Source of the DNA: Bugula neritina
Lineage: Eukaryota > Animalia > Bryozoa
Assembly: GCA_964035545.1 (NCBI GenBank)
Contig: OZ037765.1
Span: 6,644,698 to 6,708,697 of the forward strand
DNA length: 64,000 bases
Direction: 5' to 3'
The translations under genes were made by a program, and so were the position numbers. A model generated the notes under the pieces. It was not told where the DNA came from and searched no databases. It was given only the letters and a program-made list of their open reading frames with translations. Positions 26,977 through 64,000 of this stretch are shown piece by piece. How positions within the stretch are numbered: position 1 is the stretch's first letter; every line of letters starts with the position of its first letter.

Positions 26977-27340
26977 ACCGAGCTTTAGAAAGTCAAAGTG
27001 AGTTTCATAAAGATAACTGGAATGTTGTCACGGTTATGGTTGCAACAAATCACGTTGAGAGTGCTGAAAGTTAAGAGAAACAATTAACACCGTTGCAGCG
27101 CTAGTACTAGTTTGAAATGATACTAAACGACAAATAGAGTAGACCAATAGCGTTACTGTGTTCGATCGATGATCCAATAGCATGTTTATACTAATTTGCA
27201 TCGATACATTTAATATGTCTGCTTCCAATGAACAGCAATGAGCAGAGCTATTTTTCAACTTGCACAATTATAATTTGTTTAATGCAAAGAAATACATATA
27301 TGTATAAAGTGATAATTATAGGTGTCATGGCTTCCAAGTT
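26977..27340. promoter_or_regulatory. Inferred divergent promoter region of ENSA (-) and PIGO (+)
   Basis: Short CpG-containing window between two periodic tracts and two head-to-head genes. DRE-like CATCGATA at 27199-27206 and CCAAT at ~27144 and ~27174. TSSs are not mapped. Confidence 0.55.
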
Positions 27341-27349
27341 CTACTGATA

Positions 27350-27820
27350 TTATAACTATTAGTTTAAGTTAATAGCTACTAGTAGTAGTACTACTACTAC
27401 TAGTACTACTACTAGCAGTATTACTATTACTATAATACTATTAGTATTAGTATTAGTATTACTATTAGATTTAGTATTAGTATTACTATTACTATTAGTA
27501 TTAGTAGGGCCTATTAGTATTACTATTACTATTAGTATTACTATTAGTGTTAGTGTTACTGTTAGTATTAGATTTACTTTTAGTATTACTATTAGTATTA
27601 GTATTTCTATTAGTACTACTACTAGTACTAGTACTACTATTAGTAGTAGTAGTAGACTAGTAATACTAGTAGTAGTGGTAGTGCCAGTGGTAGTAGTAGC
27701 AGTAGACGTAGTAGTACTAGTAGTAGTAGTACTACTACTACTAGTACTAGACTACTAGTAGTACTAGTAGTAGTACTAGTATTTATTGGTATTATTAATA
27801 CTAATAGTAATAGTAATAGC
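27350..27820. repeat. 6-bp/3-bp-periodic (tattag/tattac/tagtag/tactac) tract upstream of the PIGO coding region
   Basis: Directly visible run of tattag tattac tgttag tactag tagtag units over ~470 bp. Confidence 0.95.
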
Positions 27821-44661: not shown

Positions 44662-46782
44662 CTATTTGTTTCGTTTGAATATTTTTTCAGCAAAAGAAAT
44701 GAACATCTCTTTTGGCAAATACGGTGAGGACAGAGAGCTAATCTTGGCCATCAGCTTCTGATAGCTTTCCTCTTCATAGTCTCTGTATCTCTTCTTCAAA
44801 TCTAGCTCAACAAACAGCTCTTTCACTATCTTCACCTATAAAGTAAACAATGTTTAAGTAATTTGTATAATTAATATTAAAATGACATGGCAAATTATCA
44901 GTTTAAAAATGACTCTATTCTAAGAAATTACAAGAACTTATCGTTTTATGGTTTGAGCTACTCACAAATAAAATTACTGCAAATTGAGAAGTTGACGAAT
45001 TGAATTTGTTTAAAATAAAGACTTAAATTTAACGCATCATCACTGTTCAGTCTGTCATAAGCAAGCCTACGACACTCATATCCTTATACTAGAGTAACTT
45101 GATGCACTACTCACTGAGGCGGGGTCCTTGCAGGCGTAGTGAGTCTCCAGCAGCTCTCGCTGTGTGCTGCTGCACATAATCAGAGCCTGGTTGATGAGCC
45201 AACCACATTTGTTGTCTTCAATGTCTGTACCAATCTTACCCGTCACTGCAGGGTCTCCAAAGCAGTCTAAATAGTCATCCTGCACTTGGAAAAAATGTCC
45301 CATCTCCAGAAGTATCTCCTTTGCTTTATCAAAGCTCGCATCCTAAAGGTAATATCTTATATATTTAACACAAAATAATTATATTAAAAACTACAAAAGA
45401 AATACAAATATTCCGTTAAAAAAATTCTATAAAATATGCAAACTTCGAACATATTCCCAGCATGTAAATTTAGAGCAACTATGTCTATGTTTACTCATAA
45501 TAAAATAACTAAATCACAAACTGGGCATGTTTGTCACACTAGCTTATTGTGGGACATGAGTGAATGACAGCTAAATTATTTCCCTTACATCTTGCACTCC
45601 AGCCATGTGCATCGCCAATGCAACTGGTAAGTAAAAGGAGTAGAAAGCAGTTTTCCATTTCACAATAGCATCGTATCTGCTCATAGAGAACTTTGAAAAG
45701 TCGACAACTTCCTCTTCTGCCGTGAGAAGATCTAACCCTTGACCTATCACTGTCTGCAAGGTCGTCTCGTGAAACAACTCCATGATGTCCACATAATATT
45801 TCTCCTGACGGAAATACTTTTTCAATACTTTATAAATTGCAGCCTCCAGATAAAAAGCATCATTGATAGCTATCATGCCGATATTGTCTTGTTTATACCA
45901 GCATGGCCTGCCTCTCCGAGTGACGGAGTGATCCATAATGTCATCCGCTACTAGGAAGTATGCTTGTAGCCATTCAACACACCACCCCAAAACTCTAGCC
46001 TTAAAGAGTTCTTTATCAGAATGATTGACTATGAGATATTTATAGGAAGTGGCTACTGATACGCCCCTGTTCTTCTTCCCATGTGGTACATTGTAATCAC
46101 CTATAACAAGATAAACCCATGTTGTATTCATACCTATTGTTGATTGCTCTCTAAGCCATATCAGCACCTGTTGAACACAGCTTATCTTTTAAACATAAAA
46201 AATTGTCAAAAACATTACACAACAACTCTTGTAAATGTATTAAACAACCAAAACTTAGTTACTTCAACGGCTATGTAATAACAAGCAGCTATCATGCTGA
46301 ATATTGGCTCACAATGACTCTTCAGTTTCTTTCAAATTAAGTTAACTTTTTGGCAGTTGCAAAAAGTGCCTCATTTTAACACAAATCTGCAATCTTCAAA
46401 AAGAATAGCTAACCAGAGGTCTTAAGATTTGACCAACTATAAGCATGACTTAATTTAATAAAATACCAAAACATATCCAGTAAAGCAGAAAAAAGCTATT
46501 CAATTTAAATTATCATTGTGACACGAATCATGATTCTACTATCTCTCAGGTGAAATAACTGGGGCACTTACAAACTTTAAGAAAGTGGGTCATGGCAGTT
46601 CCAATTTCAGCATCACCTGAAACCTGGCCTTCATTCAGACATTCTTCCATCAATATTTTAAAGACTTCGTCAAACTCGCTCAGCTCTTGTTTTGGATCTA
46701 TTTTAACCTTAGATGTCTGCTGTGCTGGTAACAGATGACCATTGCCATTAATGGCTGCAATCACATTCCCATTACCATTCAT
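44662..46782 (-). CDS. FDPS: Farnesyl pyrophosphate synthase (374 aa)
   Basis: Exons 46782-46572, 46100-45589, 45342-45115, 44835-44662, phase-consistent. Motifs [26 protein letters not shown] (aromatic YF chain-length gate), [46 protein letters not shown], basic C-terminus KIFKRNK. Confidence 0.97.
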
Positions 46783-48038
46783 GGTGAGCAACCTAAAGCA
46801 AAAACATCACCATACTAAGCAATAAATTATCATAAACAGTAAAATTGGCTACTAAACCTTTTAAACTGTCTTGTTTCTGAGTAAGCAATGAATATTATAT
46901 AACCATGATACACTAAAAGCATACAAATTCATTTATTATAGCCAAGTGAAACAACGACAGTCCATAATTACATGTTAATTTAAAAACAATGAGTTACAAT
47001 CAAAATACATTAAAATTAAAATTTTTATAACTTTCATTTTTACAATTACAGTAATGTGTGACCACCATTATTGACAGTATTAAAAAATTCCATAGTAATT
47101 AGTAGTTGATGATTAATCAAATTAAGTTATCACATTAACTCAGTATTAACTATAAATTATGACAACAATAAAAAATATTGAATCCTAATAACCAAATTCA
47201 GTTATAGTATTCAACCAAATCACACCAAAACTTGAAAATGTACTGGATAATTACCCATTCAAAAATCCATTGCAAAACAGTAATAATATTAAAGCGTAAT
47301 GGTAGCAAAAAGTCATGAAGTGAACCTGATTAAAAAGTTTAATGAAAATGTTTAGATGACAATGGTGATAACACATTTATTAACAAATTAGGTAAAACGT
47401 AGTGATTTTAATTGACTTGATTTGTAATATATAACAATAATATCGTTAGACAAACATTTATATTTGTATTATGATTACTATTTCATGTGCATATTACTGA
47501 TACTACACGATGAAGAAAATAATATGCCAACAGACAATAGTCATAAAGATGTTTGAACATTAACAACATTAATTTGCTTAGCAGTGTGGAGTGAGGATTC
47601 CAAGTTAATCTTGAGACTTATCTTTAAGTCTATCCTATGTTTTTATCTACGACATTATTATCGTATTATGCTAACCCAAAAGAAGTGTAAACAGTGAGCT
47701 ATCTATGAGCTCACTCCATGTGTTCATATTAGTATTTATATTATTACTATTATAATAAAGAATAATTAAAATTATGAATATTATTGCAACTACAGTTGTA
47801 CAAATCAAACAATATACTTATAGTTATAATCAACAATAATAGCCATCACCCATTAGTATTGTTGTGATTTTGCGGGTTTAATGAAATAGACAAGTAGTCT
47901 GCATGCCAATACTTGTAATTGTTAAATAAAAGTCTTTGTAAAATGTTGATTCTAATAGTCTTTATTGATGTGTCCTCTGCGAGCTCCAGTGTTAGACTGA
48001 TTCATACTAGAAAAACTCACGCTTATATACAGAGGGGT

Positions 48039-48145
48039 CCGAAGTTCGTACGAAGTTCGGAGTTCCGGCGACCGATGTCGGAAATATCCGGTCCGATCTC
48101 GGACAGGCTCCTCCGACATCGGTTCCGACTTCGAACGAGCTTCGG
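48039..48145. repeat. CpG-rich imperfect palindrome (short foldback/MITE-like)
   Basis: ccgaagttcgtacgaagttcgga...accgatgtcgga pairs with tccgacatcggt tccgacttcgaacgagcttcgg. Confidence 0.8.
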
Positions 48146-48268
48146 CTCACATAGTTAATTATTTATAAAACAAAAAGAAAAGTGGCAGGGAATACAACTC
48201 ACAAAAACTAGTACAGTAAACAAACAAAAATAATAGAAAGGGCAATTCACAATCATTACGCTATTTAC

Positions 48269-48466
48269 TGTTGTGTTTAGTGTTACAATGTCACACCGGA
48301 TATATACCCCCAGCGGGGCAGAAGCGAGATTTCGAATGTTAGAAGTCAAGTTTAGGTTTCGGCTGGCCAGCCATAGAAATACTTTTAAATTCTTATTTTA
48401 CTACTAGTAGCGTACTTGTCATTGACTGCAACGTTCACATCATCATACGAAGGTAAGAATACAACA
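48269..48466 (+). repeat. 5' LTR
   Basis: Direct repeat of 52897-53094; G at 48410 versus A at 53038 is the only difference seen. Confidence 0.97.
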
Positions 48467-48477
48467 TGGTGGCAGCG
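48467..48477 (+). other. Primer-binding site complementary to the 3' end of tRNA-Leu
   Basis: TGGTGGCAGCG is the reverse complement of ...CGCTGCCA-CCA, the 3' end of metazoan tRNA-Leu(AAG). Confidence 0.8.
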
Positions 48478-48735
48478 CGTACTAACTTCAGCTGCAGATT
48501 AAGTCTGATTATATGATTCACTGGTTGTGAGCAATCAATTCATTGACGGCTTTTCTCTACTCTTCCAGTGATTTGAATTGTTTGTTTGATACTTGCTGTT
48601 GTTCTGCCTGAAGTTTTGTGTTTGTTTTTTCTTTTTATGTTGAACTTGCGGCTCTTTTGATGGTTGCAGTTTGAGTTTAGTATTGTGGTGGTTTTCTTTT
48701 GTTATTTGTGAATTTGTCCGTTGTTTGATAAAGTC

Positions 48736-51700
48736 ATGGATGGTCTCAGACAGCCTTCTGGGATGTGTTTTGAGGGCAATGTGTCGGAGAACTGGAAACG
48801 ATTCCGCAGAAATTTTGAAAATTATTTGATGGCTATTGATGTAGTTCTAACTCCCAAAGCGAATCCCACAGACCCTGAACCTGCCGGCAATGCAGCCATA
48901 TCCCGGAGGCAGATAGCAATGTTTCTGCATATTGCTGGCGACGAGACCAATGAGATTTTCTCACAGTTGGAGGCCCCAGCTGGGAAAAGTAAGACGGTAC
49001 TAAGTGATGTACTGGATATGTTTGATACATATTGTAACCCGAGAAAAAATGAGCTCTATGAGTGGTTTGTGTTCTGGTCGATGTCGCAGACTGAAAGTGA
49101 GCCTATAGATGTATATTTAAAGCGACTCAAGTCACAGGCATCGCGGTGTGACTTTCCAGAGGGTGTGAAGTCAAAGATGTTGCTATGTCGTATCGTTTTT
49201 GGCTTGACATCTGTAAAGCTGAAGGAAAGATTACTTCGTGACAACACGATGACTTTAGAAAAAGCCGTAGAGGATATTCGGGCTACTGAGATGACTGAAG
49301 CACAGCTGAGCCTGATTGCTGATGGGGATAAGTCTAGTTTAGCGATGAGACAGGTTGCCACTGTTGTCAACAAACCCATTCACAAGGGTGGACTTACCAC
49401 TGACAAGAAGATAAAATGCAGATTCTGTTCGTATGAACATGTCTACGGCAAATGTCCGGCATATGGCAAAAAGTGTAACAGTTGTCATGGTTTAAATCAC
49501 TTTGAAAAACGATGCCCAAAAAAGCTCGTTCATGCCGTTGGAGTCGAGACTGGAGAAGAAGTGCTGAATAAAAATCTTTCAACCTTGTTTATCGGAATGG
49601 TAGAGACAGTCGAGGCTAAGAAGTCGTGGTTTGTGGATGTCAAGTTGAAGGACAGTGAAAGAAATTCTTTCAAAGTTGACACAGGAGCCGAAACAAATAC
49701 TGTAACTGAAGCGATGGCCAATAAATTGGGTGTAGAAATAAAACCATCCAAGGTCCGACTCCTGGGGTACAACAGGTCTAGCATACAGACTTCAGGCTGT
49801 GTAACACTGCCTGTGAGTCTTCCTTATTCGGACATGAGCTATAATTTGAGATTTGAGGTGGTTCCCAATAATCTAGCACCGATTTTAGGTTTAGAGGCAT
49901 GTGAGTTACTAAAAATTGTGCAAAGAGTTAATGAAATAACTCCGGCAGACATCCTGGCCGAATATCCTGATGTTTTTGAAAGGATTGGGTGCTTGGATGG
50001 TGAACATAATATATCGATAGACGCGTCTATAAAACCAGTGATTCACCCACCAAGGCGTGTGCCCCTTAGCATGATGGATCGTGTTAAAACTGAACTGGAG
50101 CGGATGGAGTCTGTCGACATTATCAGGAAAGTAGATCAACCAACCATGTGGGTAAATAGTATGGTTTGTGTCGAAAAGAGAGACGGTTCTGTGCGCATAT
50201 GTCTGGACCCAAAAGACTTAAATCGTGCAGTTCGACGTGAACATCATAAAATTCCTACTTTGGAGGATATTGCATTCAGGTTTAATGGCATGAAACACTT
50301 TACTATTCTGGATATGAAGCATGGCTATTGGCATATCCGCCTATCCCCTGAAAGTAGTCTTCTCACTACGTTCAACACGCCATTTGGCAGATATTGCTAT
50401 AAAAGACTACCATTTGGCCTTCACTCATCTGCCGAAGTGTTCGAAAAACGTGTCGAACAGATTTTTGGTGATCTAGCGGTCTCCATATACTTTGATGACC
50501 TAATTGTGGCCGGTCGCACGCAGGCGGAACATGACAATAACCTCCACAAAGTATTGCAGAGAGCCCGGGAGTGCAATGTGCGTTTTAACAAAGAAAAAAT
50601 TCAAGTCAATCGCCAAGAAGTCAACTACCTTGGGCATATTGTGTCCGTAGATGGTCTAAAGCCTGACCCAAACAAGGTGTCAGCTATTGCAGACATGCCT
50701 GAACCCACAGACAGAAATGGTGTACAACGGCTGTTGGGCACAGTCAACTTTCTTAGGAACTACATCCCGAATATGTCCACAATTACTGAACCTCTCAGAT
50801 GCCTTTTGAAGAAGGATGTGGATTGGTTCTGGGGTCCAGAACAGCAATCAGCCATGGCCAATATCAGAAGTGTTCTCATGAATGACAGTGTTTTGAAGTA
50901 CTTTGATGTAAACAAGCCGGTAAATCTCCAAGTAGATGCCTCTAAGTCTGGGCTTGGTGCTGTGCTACTACAGCAGGGTAGGCCTGTAGCCTATGGCTCT
51001 CGGGCCCTGACCAGTGCTGAGATCAATTATCCCCAAATTGATAAAGAGTTACTAGCTATGGTCTTTGGCTGTGAGTACTTCCATAGCTATGTTTATGGTC
51101 GTCCTATAGCACTACAGACTGATCACAGTCCCTTGTTATCCATAATGAAGAAACCTTTACATAAAGCATCTCCACGGCTACAACGACTGCTCCTGAGATT
51201 ACAACGTTATGAAGTAGCCCAGGTCACCTATGTCCCAGGGAAATATCTCTATCTTGCTGATACTCTGTCTAGAGCGTATAGCACCAAGACTCCGTCGACC
51301 CAAGCTGACCTGGAGGATGAAGTAGTGATGGTTCACTCGCTGGAGGTTGCAAGTGAGATGAGTGACTGGTTGAGTACGGCATATTCGGATGACACAACAA
51401 TGTCGGATCTCAAGCAGGCGTGCCAAGAGGGTTGGGACTGGACGCATCGTAGTCATGCACCTGCCAACCTACAACCCTATTGGTTGGTAAGAGATGAACT
51501 ATATGAAGCTGGTGGTTTTCTTTTCGTAGGTGAGCGCCTAGTTGTTCCGGTTGGTGCACGAAAAGAAATGTTGAACAAGATTCACCAGGGACATTTGGGA
51601 ATACAGAAGTGTAAAGAGCGAGCCCGTAGGTCTGTTTATTGGCCGGGACTGAATCAGGACATCTATTCAAAGGTTAGCCTATGCAGTGAGTGTGCTATGT

Positions 51701-52680
51701 TTGCGAACAGGCAGTCAAAGGAGCCACTTATGCCTCATGACACGCCCACATTGCCGTGGTACACTGTAGCCATGGATATAATGCAGTTTCACGGTCAGGA
51801 CTACTTGTTAGTAGTTGACTGCATGTCACACTTTCCCGAACTACGTTTATTAGGTGGAAAAACTGCAGAACATGTTGTCATGGCCCTGAAATCCATATTT
51901 TCAATTCATGGCGTGCCCAAATCCATTATGGCGGACAATATGCCCTTTACAAGTCATGTGATGAAACAGTTTGGTAAGGATTGGTGTTTTGATATTGTTA
52001 CCTCCAGTCCACACCATCATCAGTCAAATGGTCTTGCTGAACGGTATGTTCAGACTGTGAAGCAGTTTTTAAGGAAGTGTGAACAGTCTCAGGTTGATGT
52101 GTATCACTCTCTACTAGTCTACAGAGAGACACCACTGAGTGGTTGTCTATATAGTCCAGCAGAGATGCTTTTCAGCAGGAATTTGAGAACTGGACTCCCG
52201 ACGACTACCGCATTCCTGACTCCAAGTACAGTAAATTCCACTGGTGCTCTCAAAGCAAGACAACAGACAGCTAAAGCATATTACGATCAGCGGACAAAGG
52301 AACTACCCAATTTACCCCTAGGCTCTGAAGTATTTATGAGAGCTGGTCCAGAAAAGATCTGGACACCTGGATGTGTGGTTGGACATCATGGTGCACCGAG
52401 GTCATACCTCGTTGATAATGGGTCTCGACTCCTAAGGAGAAATCGAGTTCATTTGAAACCCAATAACACGATTGTTCGTCCTAGTTCCGAGCTGGACTCT
52501 TCTAGCCCAACGGATACTGAAGAGCTACCAAACCCCAATCTTCCAACACCAGTTGTGTCAGACCAGGAAGTTAAAGCAGTTACCCCAACTCGCAGTGTTG
52601 TCCCCCCTATCGGTAGGCGAGGTGTTAGGTCCAGTAGAGGGGTGCTTCCATCAAGATTTAAAGATTTTGATATGAACTAG
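48736..52680 (+). CDS. Gag-Pol polyprotein (Gag zinc knuckles, aspartic protease, RT, RNase H, integrase)
   Basis: Uninterrupted ORF from ATG 48736. CNSCHGLNHFEKRC knuckle, FKVDTGA protease, LPFGL/YFDD reverse transcriptase, VDASKSGLG RNase H, HQGH...C..C integrase zinc finger plus DDE core (..DN..; SNGLAER). PR-RT-RH-IN order is Gypsy-type. Confidence 0.97.
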   Translation: MDGLRQPSGMCFEGNVSENWKRFRRNFENYLMAIDVVLTPKANPTDPEPAGNAAISRRQIAMFLHIAGDETNEIFSQLEAPAGKSKTVLSDVLDMFDTYCNPRKNELYEWFVFWSMSQTESEPIDVYLKRLKSQASRCDFPEGVKSKMLLCRIVFGLTSVKLKERLLRDNTMTLEKAVEDIRATEMTEAQLSLIADGDKSSLAMRQVATVVNKPIHKGGLTTDKKIKCRFCSYEHVYGKCPAYGKKCNSCHGLNHFEKRCPKKLVHAVGVETGEEVLNKNLSTLFIGMVETVEAKKSWFVDVKLKDSERNSFKVDTGAETNTVTEAMANKLGVEIKPSKVRLLGYNRSSIQTSGCVTLPVSLPYSDMSYNLRFEVVPNNLAPILGLEACELLKIVQRVNEITPADILAEYPDVFERIGCLDGEHNISIDASIKPVIHPPRRVPLSMMDRVKTELERMESVDIIRKVDQPTMWVNSMVCVEKRDGSVRICLDPKDLNRAVRREHHKIPTLEDIAFRFNGMKHFTILDMKHGYWHIRLSPESSLLTTFNTPFGRYCYKRLPFGLHSSAEVFEKRVEQIFGDLAVSIYFDDLIVAGRTQAEHDNNLHKVLQRARECNVRFNKEKIQVNRQEVNYLGHIVSVDGLKPDPNKVSAIADMPEPTDRNGVQRLLGTVNFLRNYIPNMSTITEPLRCLLKKDVDWFWGPEQQSAMANIRSVLMNDSVLKYFDVNKPVNLQVDASKSGLGAVLLQQGRPVAYGSRALTSAEINYPQIDKELLAMVFGCEYFHSYVYGRPIALQTDHSPLLSIMKKPLHKASPRLQRLLLRLQRYEVAQVTYVPGKYLYLADTLSRAYSTKTPSTQADLEDEVVMVHSLEVASEMSDWLSTAYSDDTTMSDLKQACQEGWDWTHRSHAPANLQPYWLVRDELYEAGGFLFVGERLVVPVGARKEMLNKIHQGHLGIQKCKERARRSVYWPGLNQDIYSKVSLCSECAMFANRQSKEPLMPHDTPTLPWYTVAMDIMQFHGQDYLLVVDCMSHFPELRLLGGKTAEHVVMALKSIFSIHGVPKSIMADNMPFTSHVMKQFGKDWCFDIVTSSPHHHQSNGLAERYVQTVKQFLRKCEQSQVDVYHSLLVYRETPLSGCLYSPAEMLFSRNLRTGLPTTTAFLTPSTVNSTGALKARQQTAKAYYDQRTKELPNLPLGSEVFMRAGPEKIWTPGCVVGHHGAPRSYLVDNGSRLLRRNRVHLKPNNTIVRPSSELDSSSPTDTEELPNPNLPTPVVSDQEVKAVTPTRSVVPPIGRRGVRSSRGVLPSRFKDFDMN

Positions 52681-52896
52681 GAGGCTTTGATACTCCTTAC
52701 TTTGTACATAGTTTGTTTTACTACACTCAGTCAGTTAGCTCTTATTGTCCTGTCTTCTTTGGAGATTCTACACATATATGTTACTTTTTATTTTATTTCT
52801 TTCCATGTTCATCTTCACTGTTACTGTCATATTACTGGTAAAGGATGTTACGTTTATTTTACACGGGTTATCACCGTTCTTTGTTGAGAGGGAGGA

Positions 52897-53094
52897 TGTT
52901 GTGTTTAGTGTTACAATGTCACACCGGATATATACCCCCAGCGGGGCAGAAGCGAGATTTCGAATGTTAGAAGTCAAGTTTAGGTTTCGGCTGGCCAGCC
53001 ATAGAAATACTTTTAAATTCTTATTTTACTACTAGTAACGTACTTGTCATTGACTGCAACGTTCACATCATCATACGAAGGTAAGAATACAACA
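52897..53094 (+). repeat. 3' LTR
   Basis: Direct repeat of 48269-48466, preceded by the PPT. Confidence 0.97.
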
Positions 53095-53479
53095 ATTTAC
53101 TACACTAAGAGCTTAGCTATAATTACAATATTTGAGGCATTAGAAAGCTACGCAAGGAGCTTAGCTATAATTACAGCATTTACAGTATTTACAAAGTTAC
53201 GCTAAGTCCATTATAATAGTGACGCGATATAATTACTAGAGCGTTAAAATCTATTACAGTATTACCATTAGACTTAGTCCTTAGATTTACTAATTTGCTG
53301 TTAATCATTAAATGCAATGTATTATTGTAAATGTATAGCGATTACATTTTTATTTACTATAACCACATGCTATTTAAATTATAAACTAAAACTTAAAAGT
53401 TGAAACAAAGTGACCGTGTACTTGTAGATACCTTAAACTACAAAATCGAGTAAATAACCGGGTCTAATTACTAACTAGA

Positions 53480-53815
53480 TTAATTAGTATAAGTAGTACT
53501 GATGAGTAAATGTAATGACTAAAAGTAAAATTTAAAATTCTAAACCCAAACACTTAAGTTTTAGTAACTTTCACTATATCATAATCATAATGACTAATGT
53601 TATCACTACCAGTACAACTAGTACTAGTAGTAGTACAAGTACAAGGCTAGTACAACAAGTTGAAGTAAAACCAGAACTATTAGTATTACTAAGTCTAATA
53701 CTAATGCTATTGTATTGGTATTACTAAAAGTAAAAGTAAAAATTAAAAGTAAAAGTAAATCTAAGAGTAAAAGTTGTTGCCTAGGCTAATGCCTATTTAC
53801 TAATTTAGTATTTTA
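53480..53815. repeat. 6-bp-periodic TA-rich tract on the FDPS side of the FDPS/HMGCR divergent region
   Basis: e.g. taaaac cagaac tattag tattac taagtc taatac taatgc ... taaaag taaaag ... taaatc taagag taaaag. Confidence 0.8.
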
Positions 53816-53819
53816 GTTT

Positions 53820-54428
53820 CTAAGAACAGTGAGTATCAATTTGCTTAGCAGTCGTAAACGTATTGGCTAAGAATGTGAATAGTGTGTGAAACAGCTTTGT
53901 TTCTCCATAGGCGTGAGCACCCTACAGCTCTGGTCACTAACATTTAATTATAATTATTATTCTGACAAGTATGAACCACTGAGCTGGAATAGATTGAGTT
54001 ATTGAGTTCATTGGTATGAACTATGAAGTTAAGTCGAAGTTTCACTTTGAGAAAATTGCCTGTTGCCAACTTTTAATTTCATACTTGTGCAGAAATACAA
54101 TTAATAGTTGTTATAAATCTTTTAAATATTAAAAATAAATGTGGAACACAGTCAACAAATTGCAACATCAGCTTATATTTTTGACTAATCACTGTCGTTA
54201 TTATTTTATCGATACTTTTTTGTTACGTGTTGATAAACGACCGATATTTTAAACATAGCACATTAGGTCTAACTAGTCGCGCGATGATAGGCCTATAAAC
54301 GAATCGTTATTGCTATCCGAATGTTTATTTTTAGAACAGTTCTAGTTGCTTGGCATTTAAAAAACGGAGTTGCTCATTCAGTCTCGAGCAAAACTCACAG
54401 TTGGCGAGTCGCCATCCGGTCGGTCAAA
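53820..54428. promoter_or_regulatory. Inferred FDPS/HMGCR bidirectional promoter and HMGCR non-coding exon 1
   Basis: CpG-containing window bracketed by two periodic tracts. Perfect DRE TATCGATA 54207-54214. Reverse CCAAT boxes (ATTGG ~53862, ~54010). Initiator-like TCATTC/TCAGTC 54374-54383 followed by a donor aaa|GTAAGA at 54429. The FDPS first exon was not located. Confidence 0.55.
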
Positions 54429-54549
54429 GTAAGAAATAAAATATTACTTAACGGTACGGCTCTAATTTATTAAACTTGTATAATCATTATGATGATCATT
54501 TATCAGTATAATAATGGTCTCAAGGTTTTACTTAGTACCGGTGATGGTA

Positions 54550-54920
54550 ATTCTAATTGTGCTCATAAACTATCACTATCACTATGCGTATACTAATGCT
54601 AATAGTAATAGTTATAGTAATACTTACTCGTAGCTTTAGAGTTACTGTTAGTGTTAGTTGAACCTGAACTTGAAGTTTTACTTTAACTTTTAGCTTAACA
54701 ATGTCATTGTCAATATGAATATCAATATTAATAATAACTATAAGTATAACATAAACTTTAATAACTATAAGATTAAGTGTAACTTATTAAGTTTAAGCCC
54801 AAGTCTAACACTAGTTACTAACAGTAACATTAACATTAACAGACAACAGTAACTCGGTTACTGAGTTAGTGTTACACTTACACTAACTTACTGTTACTGT
54901 TAGTGTTGAAGTTAAACTGG
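54550..54920. repeat. 6-bp-periodic TA-rich tract at the start of the inferred HMGCR intron 1
   Basis: aatgct aatagt aatagt tatagt aatact tactcg tagctt tagagt tactgt tagtgt tagttg aacctg aacttg aagttt tacttt aacttt tagctt. Confidence 0.85.
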
Positions 54921-56837
54921 GTGCAGGTTATTTCGCACACAAGTCTTTTTGTAACCACTTTTTCAGGTCGTTTCGTAGACATCAATATGAATATGATTAT
55001 AAATGAACTAAAATACAAATTTGTTGATATTTATTGTTTGGGGTTAATTCATTATTCATTTTGTGTACAGCAGTTTCACTGAGTTTGTGTACGAAAAGAC
55101 AGGAACTCTTATTAATATTATCACTGCCATATAATATTTGCTTATAGTTTTGTTGTGATGAGTATAATAGTAATTGTAATGACTAATAATAATTATCATT
55201 ATGATCATAGATGAAATTGATTGTGTCTTCAAGTCTATGATTATTCGATTCTGCTTGTAATCCCGATGTGTTATAATGGTTATGACAATCATTCTCATAG
55301 TTTCTAACAGTAACTGTCACCTCTCATGGCTGCCCTCATGGCTCATGCCGTCACTCTGTCTCGCAGCCATAGACTTATAGGCAGTGTTACACTTGCTGAT
55401 TCTTGTACTGTATTTCACTATTACCAGATTACTGAATGAGTTTTAAAAGGACTTTATGATGCTGTTTGCGACTTGCATATTTTTATTTTCTTAGTTGGGG
55501 TTTATTTTTAGGAATTACAATTAGAAAGATTAATGAACAAAATAATAATGAAAATTTTGGTCTGATGTTTTGTAAGCCTGCTTTTAAATAGAACTGTAGG
55601 CTATTTCAGTTTCTAGACTAGTGACCTTACAGTAACACTGAGAGTTAGTCTACAGCCAGGATAATGACCCAACCTTATTGTTAAATTCTGACATCAGCTC
55701 ATTTAATTTACAAAGCTGCTGCTCTTGGTGGTGCTACTAGTAACTGAGGCTTTAGTTTTTATTAGACAAGTGTGCTGCCTTCTGCTTCTAGAACTACCAA
55801 ATTACGTATTCATATAATTTATATTAATCTATTGAAGTAATTCTTATAAATTAATATTTGTAAACTTTGCTGACTTTCCAGTAAAGTTTTTGTTGGGGAA
55901 TTACATGGCTATATACCTACACTAATACAGTAATTTTAATTTCAAATAATGAACTATATGAACAGATCTGGAGTTGTGACATCTTTGCACTGTATATCAG
56001 TGATTTTTGTAGGAAATTGATGCAATAAAATATTTTTTGTTTGTAATGGCCGACTATAAAACCCCAATAGCAATAGCAAAACCTGTATGCATAATAAATC
56101 ACTTTCTTAATAAAAGTAATATTATGCAGTTGTGAAGCGTGCAAGTCAGTACAGTACAATATAGTACAATGTGTATAATGTCAGTTGTCAAAAAAGTTAC
56201 CAATCTAATCATGCTAAGCTTAAAAATTTGAATTTAGTTTGTATTATGAAATAAAATTTGGAGGCCTAACAGTTTGCTAGAATTAGAACAGCACTCCTGA
56301 CATATTGAGGGCAGTGCTTTTGTCCAAAGTCTCGTACATGTCAATGTCATTTCCAGGCACCCCAGCAGAAAAAGAGTTGTCTATTGACTAGTTATTGAGT
56401 GTGATTGGAGCTTTAGCAGTGTTATTTTAGATCAAGTATTGATAATGTTCGTTTTTTTCTTGCCCACCATGTCCTATGACTAATATACCCTCCAAGATAT
56501 TCTCAATTTATTCAAATTTATGCAATGTGCAGTGAGACTTAAAAGTGCAATATAACACATAACCTGTCATGACTACCAAGTGTGCATGAATATAAAGCGT
56601 GATCTCACTACTCATTATTCACGCGTGCCCTAGTATAACATAAGCTGATGTGCATGCATCTCATGCCATTATTTAACCAGTGTTTAGCCCACTCCTGCGC
56701 AGTGCTTTGTTGAACGGTATTTCATCAACATTGCGAGTGGGCTCACTGGTTACTATCAACTCGCACACCTATGCGAAGCAACCATTAATAGAGTTCAACC
56801 ACACCTGTACTGAAGTGAATGTTTTAGGATTAGCAAA

Positions 56838-59800
56838 ATGCCGTTCACAAACATTTTCCGAGCTCATGGTCAGTTTTGCGCATCACATCCATGGGAGGTG
56901 ATAGTTGCCACAGTTACTATTACGATGTGCATGATGTCCTTCAGCATGCTCACTGGAGACCCCCAACTCTGTGGGTGGAACTACAAATGTGAAAATTTGG
57001 AGGTAGGTAACAAAGAGAATAGATGTGCGAGATTTTAATTATAGACATCAGCATGTACTAGCATATGACTGGGGTTTTCTCCTTATTCAACTGATTTCTA
57101 GTTGCATACTATAATGGCATTTTATAATAATAAATCTCTTTGATTGTGTATGATTGTCAATTACCCAATACTGAGCTTACCTGAATTTCTTAGCATATAA
57201 TTCCAAATCTATATGACTTTATTCTCTGTAGTGTTCTGCCTTTTTTGAACCCGGATATCTAATTATTTTTGTTGCACATTTTAGGCGGATGTTAAAAGCT
57301 CAGATATATTAATACTGACAATTACCAAGTGTTTAGCAGTAGTGTACGTGTATCTCCAATTCAAATCTCTTCGGAGAATTGGCTCCAAGTATTTGCTAGG
57401 TATGTACCTAAAGTTTCCTGTTTCTCCCAGTAAAATATAACAGTTTGTGTTCTTATGTTGGTCTTACCCTTTGGGCAATTTATTCCCTTCTGTATGGTAT
57501 TTAGATCAGGACGGACTAGTTTCTAGTTTCGTTTATATAGCATTGAACTCTGCAGAAATATTTTGGCTATATCTCAAGTACAACTTTAGAGCTGATGTTT
57601 AGTGCATTTTTGCACTCAATTAATCTTCACTTAATCAGCTTGAGCAACCTGGTTTGGATTTTGCTGTCTGGTAGAGAAGATAGTTAGCAAAAACTATTGA
57701 GTTGTGTTAATTTTCCTTTGTTAAATATTGCAATAGACTCTTGATATTTGTAGCAGTGTGCTAAGTATATATTTTATGTGTTGAAATCATTCTAGTGACT
57801 AATAATCTGTATATTGCAGCAGCTAAGAATATCATATCATAAAAGTCAATAGTAATCAGTATTTATTCTCTGAGGCCTAACATCACTGAACTGAAAGCAA
57901 CATCATCAGTCTGTGAACTTAACTGAAATGTGCACACAGCATTTATTACAAGACTCAGTTGCATGATGCACAACTCCCAAATGTATTTAATTGGCTAAGA
58001 TATTACTAATATTACTGTATTAGCTAAGATATTACTTGATATTTTACTACTGAATGAATGTTTCTAGTCAGTAGTCAGCCCTGCATTACTGGCTATGACT
58101 TGTTACATTGTATTGATTTAACTAAACCATGTTTAGAATAGGAAGTCATGTTTTCCTCATCTTATTCTCTGCTTGATAGTGACTCACAAAATTTCCTTAG
58201 ATTTTTCAGTTAGACTTTGGACTATGGAATAGCACAGTATTTTGACAATATGGTACATTAGCCAGTTTCAAAGGTTTTCCCAACACTTATTGCAATACTG
58301 TAGAAATACTTATACTTGCTATAATTAGAATTGGACATGTTTTGTAGGTCTGGCTGGACTATTTACAGTGTTCTCCAGCTTTGTGTTTAGCACTGCTGTG
58401 GTTAACCTGGCAGGCAGTGACCTCACTGGTCTCAAGTAAGTCTCTGAGCTAACTTAGTCCATGTACCCTTCCTAAAACCTTCTAAATACAGTGTATGTGG
58501 TCCTCAGGCTACATTCTTATGATACTTATGATACTAGATCAGTGGTTCCCAGCATTTTCCAGCTTTTCATTCTTCTCACTGATTTAAGTATTTTTTTCTT
58601 AACCTATGCCTTGTTTTCTAACATTAAATTATATTGTATAGTAAACCACAATCGGTCATTAATTAGAAGTTGATAAATGCTACAAATTTCTCTCAAGTGC
58701 CCCAAAGTTTATACTGAAATCAGCTCACCAAGTTACGGATATGGAAGCAGCATATGCTCTGTTCTGTTTCAGTGAGGCTCTGCCATTCTTCCTTCTTCTG
58801 GTTGATCTCTCTAAGGCCTGCGCCTTGGCCCGGTTTGCTCTCAGCGCCAAGGACCAGAATGAAGTGCGAGATAATATAGCTAAGGGGATGGCAGTGCTCG
58901 GCCCCACAATGACTTTGGATGCCCTGGTAGAATCTCTGGCTATTGGTGTTGGAATGCTCTCTGGTAAGCAATGCTACTTGACTTTTGTTCCTGGTGTTCC
59001 CCTTCGGCTCATGTGCTATATGTCTTTATATTCTATCGGCATAATCTGTAATGTTCAATTATTCATATGCTTAAGATGTGTATACTTGATGAATTTTATG
59101 TCCGTTCTAGTAAATTCTGTCATTGGTTTTATGAGCTTGCAACCATTTGCCTAGCCAGCAGTTTTCTTATGTGTGAAGTTCTAAATGTATAAAATACGAG
59201 TATTTGTAACACAGATGTATTTATATATAGTAGTCATCGTTAAATGATACTAAACCTCTAACATACAAATTTACAGGCCTGAAGCAGTTGGAAACAATGT
59301 GCTGCTTTGGTTGTCTGTCAGTTGTGGCCAACTACTTTGCCTTCATGACGTTCTACCCGGCCTGCTTGTCTCTGATTCTGGAGACTTCTCAGAGTCTGAG
59401 GGAGAAGACCAGCATCTGGCACCTGACCGTCCTCCTGGAGGAAGAGGAGGACAAGAAACCCAACCCTGTCACTCAGAGAGTCAAGATGATTATGGTAATC
59501 TATCTCCTATGCAGTTCGTGTCAGTGTGCATGGATACAGCATGCAATACACAAGTTACTTCAGCTGTTATACACTGCGTTTCCATCATTCACATTGAATG
59601 GAGTTTTAATTTGCCTAATGGAAATGGTTACATCGAAGGGAACCATGAGTTAATGCAAACCACATGCACAAATTAATCATGTAAAAGCAATGATAAAGTG
59701 ATGAGCAATTGTAATGAATGAAATCCATTTATAGTACTCTGTAAAATTGTCTGCAAGTTTAACTATTTTGGGAGATTTTGAAATGTTTGGAGGGAACTCT

Positions 59801-62800
59801 GTAAAAACAATATTTTACTTGTACTATCACAAAGATACTAGGTTATTATATTTTACACAGAAGTAGGGAATAAACACACAAACAAAAAGTAATAGGTTGG
59901 CACTAAAAGTAGGTAAACTATAACAATGAATGCATGACATTAGGTGCAGTAAAACTGTAATTAAGAGTACAATAGGTAACATCCTACTTTACAGCACTAT
60001 AATATGTTTATTAGGTTTGTCTATTATGATATTGAATACAATAGATGCTCATTACATAAAAATTTCCAACCCAAATTTAGTCAAGTGTAAAAGGAACTAA
60101 TCGTTACATTTTTTGTCATATTAGTTATGTAATGTTGAGTTCATACATGTTGCACTGCATTAAACTCCTGAATCACTTATTATACTGGCATCTCTAGAAG
60201 CATATTTGACTCCTTATAATCTTAAACCTTTCCTTTGTAGTCTGCGGGTCTTGTGCTGGTACACGCGCACAGTCGATGGGTACTGAGTCATACTGATGAT
60301 CAATCAGCTGCTGATATGGCATTCAACGAGATGAACGTTAAAGTTACACCCGAGATGCCTCTTTGGCAATTTTATTTGTTGAGGTGTGAATACGTTATAC
60401 TTCTTTACATGTATGATAGAAATGATTAAATTGCTTCATTAAATTACTGTAATGGGCATATTTTGTAATAAATATTCACCATATTGATTGAAAATGTGCA
60501 GTGGGAAAGGAATCTATGCTAATCTCGGCTTTAGTAATTCAAATATTGAAAGTCCTGTTATTGGACGCTATGCATCTTCCGTGTTGATGTTTTTAGTTAC
60601 TGTACAGGAAGTTTAGAGTGTATTCGTGGTACTATCTAAAAAATCATCAAGTTATATGAAATGCCTTGTAGGTTAGCCCATATGAACATTGACTATTCCA
60701 TTACACTGGGCTTAGCCTGTGCTCTCGCCCTAAAGTACACCTTCCTAGACAGTGATCCTGAAGAGCCCGTAGCGACGACCAGCTCGCCTTCCGAGTCTAA
60801 TGCCACGGAGCTTCCTGTTGCAACTGCAGACGCTGTTGCAGACAGCTCTGTCACCACACAAGGTGGGCATCCGTTGTAGCGCTGTCGCATGAATGTGGAT
60901 ACTAGTGACATTTATTGGAGGTTGCTGCCGCTGCTGCCTTCAACTAAGATTATGCCGGGCTCCTGGCGAGATGCTGAGGTCATAGTAACGTCTGCTGCCA
61001 TCTAATCAATGAATCTAACCTCAATTTCCTTCTCTCAATGGGATCTAAAAGTCAATAGTTTGTACTTTGTCTGGAAAGTGTCATAAGCCTTCCAGCTGTT
61101 TCAGTGGCAAAATGTGTGGTTATCGGACATTCTAATACACGTGGAGAAGATTTGATTCAAAAGTGTATAGTTTTGCACATTGAGTGGCAATGCTAAAGTG
61201 CCTTTCATCTTGTGTGTATTTAGTTCAGCCTGAAGTGCCAGTGGCCAGCTTCCAGATAGGTGAGGATTCTGATGAGGATCCAATAGAAAAGGAAGACAAG
61301 GCTGTGCAGACTCTCTCTATAGAAACACTGGGCCCTCTAGACATCAAAGCTGAGCAGCCAGAACTCCGATCTCTAGAGGAGTGTCTGGCTATATTCAAAT
61401 CTGACGTGAGTTCTTAGAATTGTTGGTAATCCCCTGCTATTATCTCGTCTACCCTGTCTATCCTGTATGTATAGAAGAAGTTAGTTAGCGAGTATTTTGT
61501 GTTTCTCTTGATAGTTTTTCCAGTATATTGAGATCTATCCTTTACTGAATGTCTTGAAGCTTTTGGTTTATAGCAATTAATTAAAATACTTCATATTGTC
61601 ACAGCTCTAGTTTTATGTGTATAGTGGGAATACTTCATATTGTCACAGCTCTAGTTTTATGTGTATAGTGGGAATACTTCATATTGTCACAGCTCTAGTT
61701 TTATGTGTATAGTGGGAATACTTCATATTGTCACAGCTCTAGTTTTCTACCTACAGAAAGGCCCAGCAGCTCTTACTGATGCCGAGATATTGACTCTAGT
61801 TCGAAACAAGCATATCCCAGCTTATAAACTGGAGGCAGCGCTAGGTCAGCCTGAGAGAGGTGTGGCTGTGAGGAGACAACTCATACAGAATGACTTGCCC
61901 AGTCACACAGCACTAGAAAATCTACCTCACAAGTATGTTTATATCAATACGATAGTCTGCTGGCTAGATATAGTAATACCATAGAGTAAGGTAACTCCCA
62001 GAACCTATAAGTTTCTATTATCACATAGATTAGATAGAGTAAATCATGCATTCAACAGTCTTGATTTGTGACAGACACTACGACTACTCATTGGTGGACG
62101 GAGCCTGTGCTGAGAATGTGATTGGATACATGCCAGTACCTGTGGGAGTTGCAGGCCCCCTCCTTCTCGATGGTCGTAAATACACAGTTCCCATGGCAAC
62201 TACCGAGGGCTGCCTGATTGCCAGTACTAACAGAGGGTGTCGAGCTATATCCGTATGTATCATATATGTCAATACTTCTAATCTCGTATTTCTTTTCTAT
62301 GTTGAAAACAATTTAGTTTATGCATTTCTGGCATTGCATTAAACTCGGGTTTTGATTTATACAGATGTCAGGCGGTGTATCCAGCTCCATCTCAAGTGAT
62401 GGAATGACCAGAGCTCCTTTAGTCCAACTACCAACCATGCTTCAGGCTAAAGAAGTTCAAGATTTTATAAAAACTTCAGATGGATTTTCCTTACTGAAAG
62501 TCGAGTTTGATTCGACTAGCAGGTAAGTCATTCTGAAATCCTAAAATAAATGGCTAAAAATTGAATATTACTGTTATGTTGAATTTAAAAATAATTAAGA
62601 TAAAAATCACTGCACATGTTTTTAATTTCTAGCGTTTAACCAATCATAATGATGTAGTTTATACGTTGCCAGTCAGTTTACTTGTGAAGAATCTTTTTAC
62701 ACTGTTACAAAATTCACCAGGTCTAGCATATGGTTCTGCATGAACTTAGAGATCGTGTTTACTAATAGGTTTGCCAGACTGGAGTCTATCGACTGCCAAC

Positions 62801-64000
62801 AAAAAGGTCGCCTTCTGTACATCCGATTCAAGTGTCAGACAGGGGATGCTATGGGTATGAATATGGTGTCTAAGGGGTGTGAGAAGGTCTTGAAGAAGTT
62901 GCAGGAGCTGCATGATGACTTAGAAATTCTCTCTCTGTCTGGGAACTACTGTGTAGATAAGAAACCTTCAGCTATCAATTGGTGAGCATTTTATGCTGTC
63001 TGTTTGTCCTCATATGCTGTTTATTAGTCCTTTACATGCTGTCTGTTTGTCCTTTACATGCTGTCTGTTTGTCCTCATACGCTGTCTGTTTGTCCTCATG
63101 TAGGAAGAGTGCATATTATTTTCGCAAAAAGAGCTTCTTAATCAGTGGTTAGGGTGTAATGTTAGTTCATACTAAGCATAGCTATAGTATGTACCAGCAG
63201 GCATTGACTTGAATATAAATGAAATATTGTTCATTACTGTTAATATAGTTAATTATTTTTCAGTTGTCTTCTCTCTGCAGGGATGTTGTGGTAATGTACT
63301 GCTGGGGTGATAAGTTATGTATTAGATGTTGTCTCTGCCTACATGCTTATATATCTCTTGTAGGATTGAAGGCCGAGGCAAGTCAGTGGTATGTGAGGCA
63401 GTTATACCCGCCAGTGTAGTCAAGACAGTACTCAAGACTACAGTCCCCGCTCTCGTTGAGTTGAACTTTAAGAAGAATTTTGTTGGCTCATCAGTAGCTG
63501 GTAGTATTGGAGGAAACAACGCACACGCTGCTAATGTCGTAGCAGCTATATTTATCGCATGCGGACAGGTAACCTCAATCAACTTACATAAACAGTTGAC
63601 ATAACTTTAAATTTAGTCCCTATACCGATTGGCTTCTATATTACAATACTTCACTGTTTCCTAAAATGAATCATTAAAAACATTTTTTGGTGCTAGAATT
63701 GTCTTCAAATAAAAGTCATGTATACTGAGTTTGCATTGTTATGTAATATCTATTCCAGGACGCTGCCCAAGTGGTTGGCAGCTCCAATTGTCTAACTCTG
63801 ATGGAGCCCACCGGACCTACTCACGAAGATCTAATGATTAGTTGCACAATGCCTACAATGGAAGTTGGAACAGTTGGGGGCGGTACAGTTCTCGGCCCGC
63901 AGTCAGCCTGCCTCAGTATGCTAGGAGTCAAGGGTTCTTGTGTGGAAGAACCTGGGCGTAACGCCCAGACTTTGGCTAGAGTTATATGCGCTGCCGTTTT
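56838..64000 (+). CDS. HMGCR: 3-hydroxy-3-methylglutaryl-CoA reductase (class I, with sterol-sensing domain), 3'-partial
   Basis: Exons 56838-57002, 57285-57399, 58348-58435, 58773-58963, 59277-59494, 60241-60383, 60672-60862, 61224-61405, 61757-61932, 62075-62252, 62365-62522, 62769-62981, 63364-63568, 63759->64000. Motifs [96 protein letters not shown]. Confidence 0.98.
61585..61746. repeat. 44-bp minisatellite, ~3.7 copies, ending 10 bp before an HMGCR splice acceptor
   Basis: Unit aatacttcatattgtcacagctctagttttatgtgtatagtggg starts at 61585, 61629, 61673 and 61717; acceptor AG at 61755-61756. Confidence 0.95.
62992..63100. repeat. ~21-23-bp tandem repeat (atgctgtctgtttgtcctcat), ~5 copies, just after an HMGCR donor
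   Basis: Repeated gctgtctgtttgtcct units beginning ~10 bp after the GT at 62982. Confidence 0.85.

Follow-up and report, generated by a model that had tools for sequence, protein, structure and literature searches.

Two genes of isoprenoid and sterol synthesis, those for farnesyl diphosphate synthase (FDPS) and HMG-CoA reductase (HMGCR), lie side by side and head to head in a 64,000-nt window of the genome of the bryozoan Bugula neritina (assembly GCA_964035545.1, contig OZ037765.1, positions 6,644,698 to 6,708,697 of the forward strand; positions below count from the first letter of this window unless a contig is named). We find FDPS on the minus strand at 44662-46782 and HMGCR on the plus strand with its ATG at 56838, and the 10,056 bp between the two start codons hold no host gene, the only genes there being transposon sequence. 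This agrees with a first-pass annotation of the window, which had claimed divergent neighbors with about 10.1 kb between their start codons. The explanation that we favor, at roughly even odds, is that the pair arose within the bryozoan lineage and was then kept, with a spacer that probably confers sterol-responsive control on both genes, two separated core promoters, and an HMGCR leader that is probably trans-spliced. The interval would probably carry sterol-responsive elements for both genes and could work as one bidirectional promoter region in compact relatives, where it measures 1.4-2.9 kb. In B. neritina it has been stretched to about 4.65 kb, and in this haplotype to 10.06 kb by two nested long terminal repeat (LTR) insertions. 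FDPS would then most likely start at a cluster of sterol regulatory element (SRE) motifs at 47.2-47.7 kb and HMGCR within a conserved island at 54.05-54.55 kb. From there the primary transcript of HMGCR would run ~2.4 kb to a splice acceptor 10 nt before the ATG, where its 5′ part would be removed and probably replaced by a trans-spliced leader.

Both genes were named from their domains and motifs, with spliced gene models searched one exon at a time and no joined coding sequence used. The four coding exons of FDPS (46782-46570, 46113-45589, 45342-45112 and 44835-44665, then the stop codon) were delimited by tblastn with a B. neritina FDPS protein (P0182), which matches them at 96-100% identity. 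PF00348 (Pfam) matches exons 2 and 3 at 3.3e-50 and 7.9e-20, and the translations contain both aspartate-rich DDxxD motifs, DDIMD and DDYLD, by which the gene is a farnesyl diphosphate synthase; the nearest named protein is 'FDPS [Bugula neritina]' of an older draft, at 96% identity. Using Pfam, RNA joints, and tblastx against relatives, HMGCR was traced on the plus strand through exons 1-7 (~56828-57000, 57283-57396, 58345-58435, 58773-58964, 59275-59510, 60241-60453 and 60667-60798) and exons 8-13 (~61262-61411, 61757-61936, 62058-62255, 62368-62523, 62752-62985 and 63344-63490); its last exon, also on the plus strand, runs from 63753 to about 64073, just past the window end at 64000. Pfam recognizes both sterol-sensing exons (PF12349 at 8.7e-05) and PF00368 exons, which cover positions 22-368 of that family exon by exon. 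With an N-terminal sterol-sensing region and a C-terminal PF00368 domain the gene is, on its domain content, a class I HMG-CoA reductase. The corresponding model in a sister lineage, represented by the older B. neritina draft GCA_010799875.2 (locus L037; 88-92% nucleotide identity), holds Patched/SSD and HMG-CoA_red domains. Each of the two genes is present as a single copy in the genome.

The published annotation of that draft places its FDPS and HMGCR ranges 130 bp apart (L037 9870-10001), a spacing that we set aside as a gene-model artefact. Its HMGCR model (910 aa) opens with a bare 3-nt ATG exon that lies opposite the true FDPS start codon, on the other strand, and its FDPS model (330 aa) is truncated and begins at an internal Met.

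The divergent pair recurs in relatives. The sister lineage keeps the pair and is collinear throughout, and among three relatives represented by metagenome contigs (S2, S3 and S4) the genes are again divergent in two that are more distant than the sister lineage: S3 (three contigs, L031, L032 and L038), with ATGs 1,396 bp apart, and S4 (L039), with ATGs about 2.85 kb apart. The S2 contigs carrying FDPS and those carrying HMGCR do not overlap, so that adjacency cannot be read there. B. neritina and its relatives have FDPS exon 2 (45589-46113) as one undivided exon of 525 nt, which in the brachiopod Lingula, the leech Helobdella and the mussel Sinanodonta (L040, L041, L043) is four exons. By this comparison the undivided exon is a shared intron loss, and since it is common to B. 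neritina and the metagenome contigs, these contigs belong to the same lineage. In Lingula, Helobdella and Sinanodonta there is no HMGCR up to 10 kb from FDPS, and human, fly and nematode have the two genes unlinked. The microsynteny check that had been proposed for the pair thus came out in its favor, and judged from these genomes the pairing is a conserved, lineage-specific feature and not a one-off neighborhood. Its conservation in bryozoans but not in the brachiopod, leech, or mussel hints at shared sterol-sensitive control, and at the 1,396-bp spacing of S3 one shared promoter region is plausible.

The flanks of the pair have changed around it. EMC6 adjoins FDPS in the window genome, the sister lineage, and S3, and not in S4; a fucosyltransferase gene follows HMGCR in the window genome and S2; and neither that gene nor EBP, a sterol isomerase gene that we describe below, was found in the roughly 2.9 kb examined beyond HMGCR in S3. 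Bryozoan gene order is minimally conserved at divergences older than about 60-90 million years (Lewin et al., PMC11789643). Because the pair outlasts changed flanks against this background of minimal gene order, we count it as a retained pair.

Much of the spacer in this haplotype is retrotransposon DNA. An element on the plus strand at 48269-53094 has two 198-nt LTRs that are 99% identical, a tRNA primer-binding-like TGG start past the 5′ LTR, a polypurine tract ahead of the 3′ LTR, and a 6-bp target duplication, ATTTAC. Its single 1319-aa open reading frame (ORF) encodes protease, reverse transcriptase (RVT_1), RNase H and integrase, including an integrase zinc domain; by its LTRs, target duplication and domain order it is an intact Ty3/gypsy-type LTR retrotransposon, and these features bear out its earlier description as young. 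It interrupts a plus-strand solo LTR of a second family, the left part of which occupies 47857-48268 and the right part 53095-53263, opening with the second copy of the target duplication; other copies of this LTR, of which the genome has at least 40, run unbroken across the insertion site. The sister lineage has neither insertion and shows the exact empty site, with 53261 joined to 47854. Since the nested element and the solo LTR are both insertions, the spacer without transposable elements measures about 4.65 kb, instead of the ~5.2 kb previously claimed from removing the young element alone. We also observed that elements of the second family measure about 6.3 kb and have LTRs of roughly 575 nt, that their LTR copies occur in pairs about 6.34 kb apart, and that several of the copies (L011-L014 among them) are 94-100% identical, making this a case of one retrotransposon family inserted in the LTR of another.

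The first-pass annotation had placed a splice acceptor 10 nt before each start codon, and an AG is present in the sequence at both. On the plus strand the HMGCR context reads tgttttag|GATTAGCAAA-ATG; on the minus strand that of FDPS reads ttgctttag|GTTGCTCACC-ATG, a candidate acceptor with a 10-nt 5′ untranslated region (UTR) (46783-46794), read from the sequence and identical in the sister lineage. RNA evidence comes from contigs of sister-lineage runs labeled RNA-seq. In these contigs the HMGCR exon-1 unitig begins at 56826 and GT..AG joints connect 57000>57283, 57396>58345 and 58435>58773, so that the HMGCR acceptor is in use. An unspliced FDPS contig (L015) stops 134 nt upstream of the FDPS ATG.

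Comparison with the sister lineage, in which introns are 85-90% and exons 96-98% identical, reveals three non-coding islands in the spacer at exon-level identity. Island 1 (53264-53507) is 95.5% identical and has a low-depth RNA contig on 53275-53447. Island 2 (54046-54545; 500 nt) is 95.4% identical, contains a CpG-rich stretch as well as TATCGATA at 54207, and is the best candidate for the HMGCR promoter. The third (56646-56827) comprises the last 182 nt before the HMGCR acceptor and is 96% conserved. Two AGT/ACT-rich tracts are the fastest-changing parts of the spacer: one at 53508-53718 (72% identity, many indels, highly repeated in the genome) and one at 54609-54912, on the HMGCR side of island 2, the tract words of which also occur in the S4 spacer. 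Unspliced RNA on the HMGCR side begins within island 2. No contig lies on 54101-54300, with contigs on both sides; contigs at depth 74 extend back to about 54.4 kb, and an unspliced contig covers 54888-56855 at depth 121, compared with about 1,500 on the exons. An onset at ~54.3-54.4 kb fits an HMGCR start within island 2, beyond which a long stretch would be transcribed and then removed, either an outron or a 5′ intron, at 54913-56827 on the plus strand.

The earlier proposal that the transcripts begin further into the interval stands in part. Unspliced HMGCR RNA does extend from ~54.3 kb, and a 5′ exon is doubtful: no single-copy part of 53.1-56.8 kb, a range that starts to the right of the left spacer arm, reaches exon-level RNA depth. 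The upstream splice partner of HMGCR would therefore lie in a repeated tract or be a trans-spliced leader, and it may well be the latter. A search for the leader recovered none: the FDPS mRNA of a relative (L042) has a 5′ UTR that matches nothing in this genome even when 3 mismatches are allowed, so that this UTR either is no common leader or has a counterpart here that differs. Shortly before the HMGCR acceptor, within an island that is 96-99% conserved, we observed a stable hairpin of ~78 nt (56674-56751, plus strand), and the 191-nt stretch that holds it (56640-56830) folds at -57 kcal/mol (z -3.4). Its predicted fold would suit an intronic small-RNA precursor or a structure that controls splicing. 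It has no Rfam match and was not found in S2-S4, and an Rfam scan of 46700-57100 gave one chance-level match only.

On the FDPS side the spacer was compared with the SRE consensus TCACNCCAC, an SRE with a nearby NF-Y or Sp1 site being taken as the mark of an SREBP target. A single 9-mer of the spacer matches the SRE type exactly: TCACTCCAC, on the minus strand at 47586-47594 and 803 nt away from the FDPS ATG. With near-matches at 47220 and 47711 it makes up a cluster at 47220-47719 that is a candidate FDPS-proximal sterol-responsive module. Shuffled sequences predict 0.01 exact matches for the B. neritina spacer (1 observed) and 0.05 for that of S4 (2 observed), and three SRE-type sites fall within 1.07 kb where about 0.25 were estimated. 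The exact site and both near-matches (3/3) are conserved in the sister lineage. S3 carries TCACCCCAT 842 nt and S4 carries TCACCCCAC 889 nt from the FDPS ATG, both on the same strand as the B. neritina site and with a CCAAT box 24-33 nt from the SRE motif; no CCAAT or GC box stands beside the exact SRE at 47586 in B. neritina. That three lineages share position and strand points to a putative sterol-responsive module anchored to FDPS. In S3 a mere 544 nt separate the motif from the HMGCR ATG, close enough for it to serve both genes, and in B. neritina the module lies 1.5 kb from island 2 without transposable elements and 6.4 kb with them. We consider it likely that the interval is regulatory for both genes, and infer that SREBP would control the two and that they would be co-expressed.

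The first-pass annotation had placed a single bidirectional promoter at 53.8-54.4 kb and had listed an FDPS start near 47-48 kb with an independent promoter among the findings that together would speak for a chance neighborhood. The candidate SRE module, 803 nt from the FDPS ATG, sits in just that place. The proposed promoter is thus likely only for HMGCR, for which island 2 at 95% identity and the RNA onset to the right of 54300 agree with it; for FDPS, the SRE cluster at 47.2-47.7 kb points elsewhere.

The best-placed alternative keeps one bidirectional promoter at ~53.8-54.5 kb for both genes, with an FDPS transcript that runs left through the AGT/ACT tract, island 1, and, in this haplotype, 5.4 kb of retrotransposon sequence before it reaches the acceptor at 46793. 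The central block of the spacer indeed has fast AGT/ACT tracts on both sides, as do the central blocks in S4 and in a second spacer of the same pathway, that of CYP51/LSS, and there is no such tract in 46.8-47.86 kb. The gap in RNA contigs at 54101-54300 would suit a start in both directions, and an FDPS transcript need not be halted by signals of the retrotransposon, which lies antisense to FDPS. Nevertheless we think this arrangement unlikely: the SRE cluster lies near FDPS at a conserved distance from its ATG, the FDPS-side RNA contig has a depth of 18 versus 74-121 on the HMGCR side, the unspliced contig L015 ends 134 nt upstream of the FDPS ATG, and a 5.4-kb insertion would be more easily tolerated in untranscribed DNA.

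Several points count against two separated, sterol-responsive promoters in a retained pair. Transcript starts, strands, and expression levels are unreliable when read from contigs, and the RNA consists of sister-lineage contigs only. The SRE consensus is that of vertebrates and may not be that of the bryozoan SREBP; around the SRE cluster the rest of the left spacer shows neutral identity (0.90), and the CYP51/LSS spacer has no SRE enrichment. The FDPS side of island 2 also has a fast tract and a conserved island, as would fit an FDPS start there.

A second pair of the same pathway bears on whether adjacency is more than chance. CYP51 (minus strand) and LSS (plus strand) stand head to head on the same chromosome (C1:7.9936-8.0164 Mb), 1.3 Mb from FDPS-HMGCR, and their spacer has a similar layout with AGT/ACT tracts like those of the FDPS-HMGCR spacer. 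The published B. neritina assembly tzBugNeri2.1 has 20,264 genes (PMC11480708), and when 20 pathway genes are placed among these, at least 2 adjacent pairs arise in 2e-4 (0.02%) of random orders, in what is a post hoc test. Less likely again than a single promoter is that FDPS and HMGCR are chance neighbors in a much-rearranged lineage, kept by inertia, each with its own promoter and without functional coupling: the long B. neritina spacer tolerates insertions, the relatives' spacers do not align, other pathway genes are dispersed, and the persistence of EMC6 beside FDPS in S3 indicates that short blocks can survive without selection, yet the pair survives where both flanks changed, SRE motifs agree in position and strand across lineages, and the second divergent pair together with EBP nearby has a chance probability of 2e-4 or less. 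We return to a retained pair with a shared regulatory interval and separate core promoters as the preferred reading. A broader version, that the bryozoan sterol pathway is partly wired by adjacency, with FDPS/HMGCR and CYP51/LSS as divergent pairs around shared sterol-responsive promoters, EBP nearby, and selection keeping them so, is possible but we offer it only tentatively.

In the mammalian SREBP regulon HMGCR, FDPS, HMGCS1, LSS and CYP51A1 are unlinked and share promoter modules of an SRE with NF-Y or Sp1 sites. The bryozoan interval concerns the same enzymes and has SRE-type 9-mers, with CCAAT boxes 24-33 nt away in S3 and S4. The mammalian regulon needs no linkage, however, whereas the bryozoan has two physically adjacent target pairs, lacks a CCAAT box beside the B. 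neritina SRE, and has predicted binding sites. Eukaryotic metabolic gene clusters include the triterpene and sterol clusters of plants and fungi and the terpene clusters of octocorals, which likewise set non-homologous genes of one pathway side by side. Such clusters have at least 3 contiguous pathway genes; here only two are contiguous, a fucosyltransferase gene parts HMGCR from EBP, the metabolism is primary, and most of the pathway is dispersed. To our knowledge, the genes of animal metabolic pathways are almost always dispersed and co-regulated in trans. Closer models are bidirectional animal pairs such as HSPD1/HSPE1 and the 5′-5′ pairs of Irimia et al. 2012 (PMC3514665), which are likewise divergent with no gene between, conserved, and functionally related, and the S3 ATGs are 1.4 kb apart. 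Classic bidirectional pairs have starts <1 kb apart, whereas the B. neritina pair, known by its ATG spacing, has a spacer of 4.65-10 kb, and unlike the ancient conserved 5′-5′ pairs of that study it is lineage-specific. The main text of Irimia et al. 2012 does not contain FDPS, HMGCR, CYP51, LSS or the word 'sterol', and we found no published mention of the FDPS-HMGCR arrangement.

If the broader reading is right, the bryozoan would have a 'regulon by neighborhood' for primary metabolism in an animal. The rate-limiting and branch-point enzymes of isoprenoid and sterol synthesis are paired in several lineages of a phylum reported to have kept almost no gene order, with a second pair on the same chromosome, which makes a natural test case for selection on shared promoters in the primary metabolism of animals. 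Spacer lengths of 1.4 to 10 kb, depending on the lineage, and the presence or absence of the retrotransposon offer natural experiments on the distance to which a divergent pair can be stretched and still work.

To the right of the pair the first-pass annotation had suspected the edge of a larger terpenoid or sterol cluster. An EBP orthologue 9 kb past the HMGCR end, with an unrelated GT10 fucosyltransferase gene between, lends this weak support; no HMGCS, MVK, IDI, terpene cyclase or P450 gene was seen in the 50 kb right of the window, for which a larger cluster is ruled out. EBP matches PF05241 at 1.1e-23 and human EBP (6OHT) at 7.1e-38 over 114 residues, and keeps the E, N and W aligned with what we take to be human E122, N193 and W196. 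By pairwise similarity this is a clear orthologue of EBP (sterol delta8-delta7 isomerase), of the EXPERA fold, and closer kinship to EBPL is less likely. At least four genes for Frag1/DRAM-like membrane proteins form a tandem array right of EBP (L007-L010, C1:6.7267-6.7587 Mb). HMGCS is 20 Mb away, other chromosomes carry the GHMP kinases, SQS, and SQLE, and the FA-hydroxylases also lie elsewhere than the FDPS-HMGCR locus. Altogether the genome encodes SQS, SQLE, LSS, CYP51, ERG4/24-type reductases, EBP and FA-hydroxylases, and with this gene set B. neritina probably makes its own sterols.

Among the spacers themselves, those of S2, S3 and S4 do not align with that of the window at E<0.01, and the k-mers that they have in common do not exceed shuffles except for tract words. 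The shared 13- to 15-mers GACCGATATTTTA and GAATGTTTTAGGATT were accordingly not used as evidence, being at shuffle level. The 15-mer GAATGTTTTAGGATT spans the HMGCR acceptor (56817-56831) and has an exact copy in S3 (L031 2023-2037), about 400 nt upstream of the HMGCR ATG, in a spacer that is otherwise unalignable.

Not only in HMGCR, CYP51 and LSS but also in EBP and a PIGO-like gene, quasi-periodic AGT/ACT-rich tracts separate the candidate promoter from the start codon. In the window they occupy 27340-27806 in addition to 53508-53718 and 54609-54912, and they are found elsewhere at L034 6587-6812 and 7720-7972 and at L007 829-1125. On an ENA contig (P0003/L022, 10001-12788) a 56-residue FDPS exon fragment is repeated in tandem and read as a 345-aa ORF; this array is a satellite-like amplification of an FDPS coding fragment and is uninformative on pairing. 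Sterol-family matches on the small unplaced contigs C45, C224, C244, C259 and C181 carry many in-frame TAA/TAG codons, which suggests that these contigs are contaminant DNA with a variant genetic code, such as that of a ciliate.

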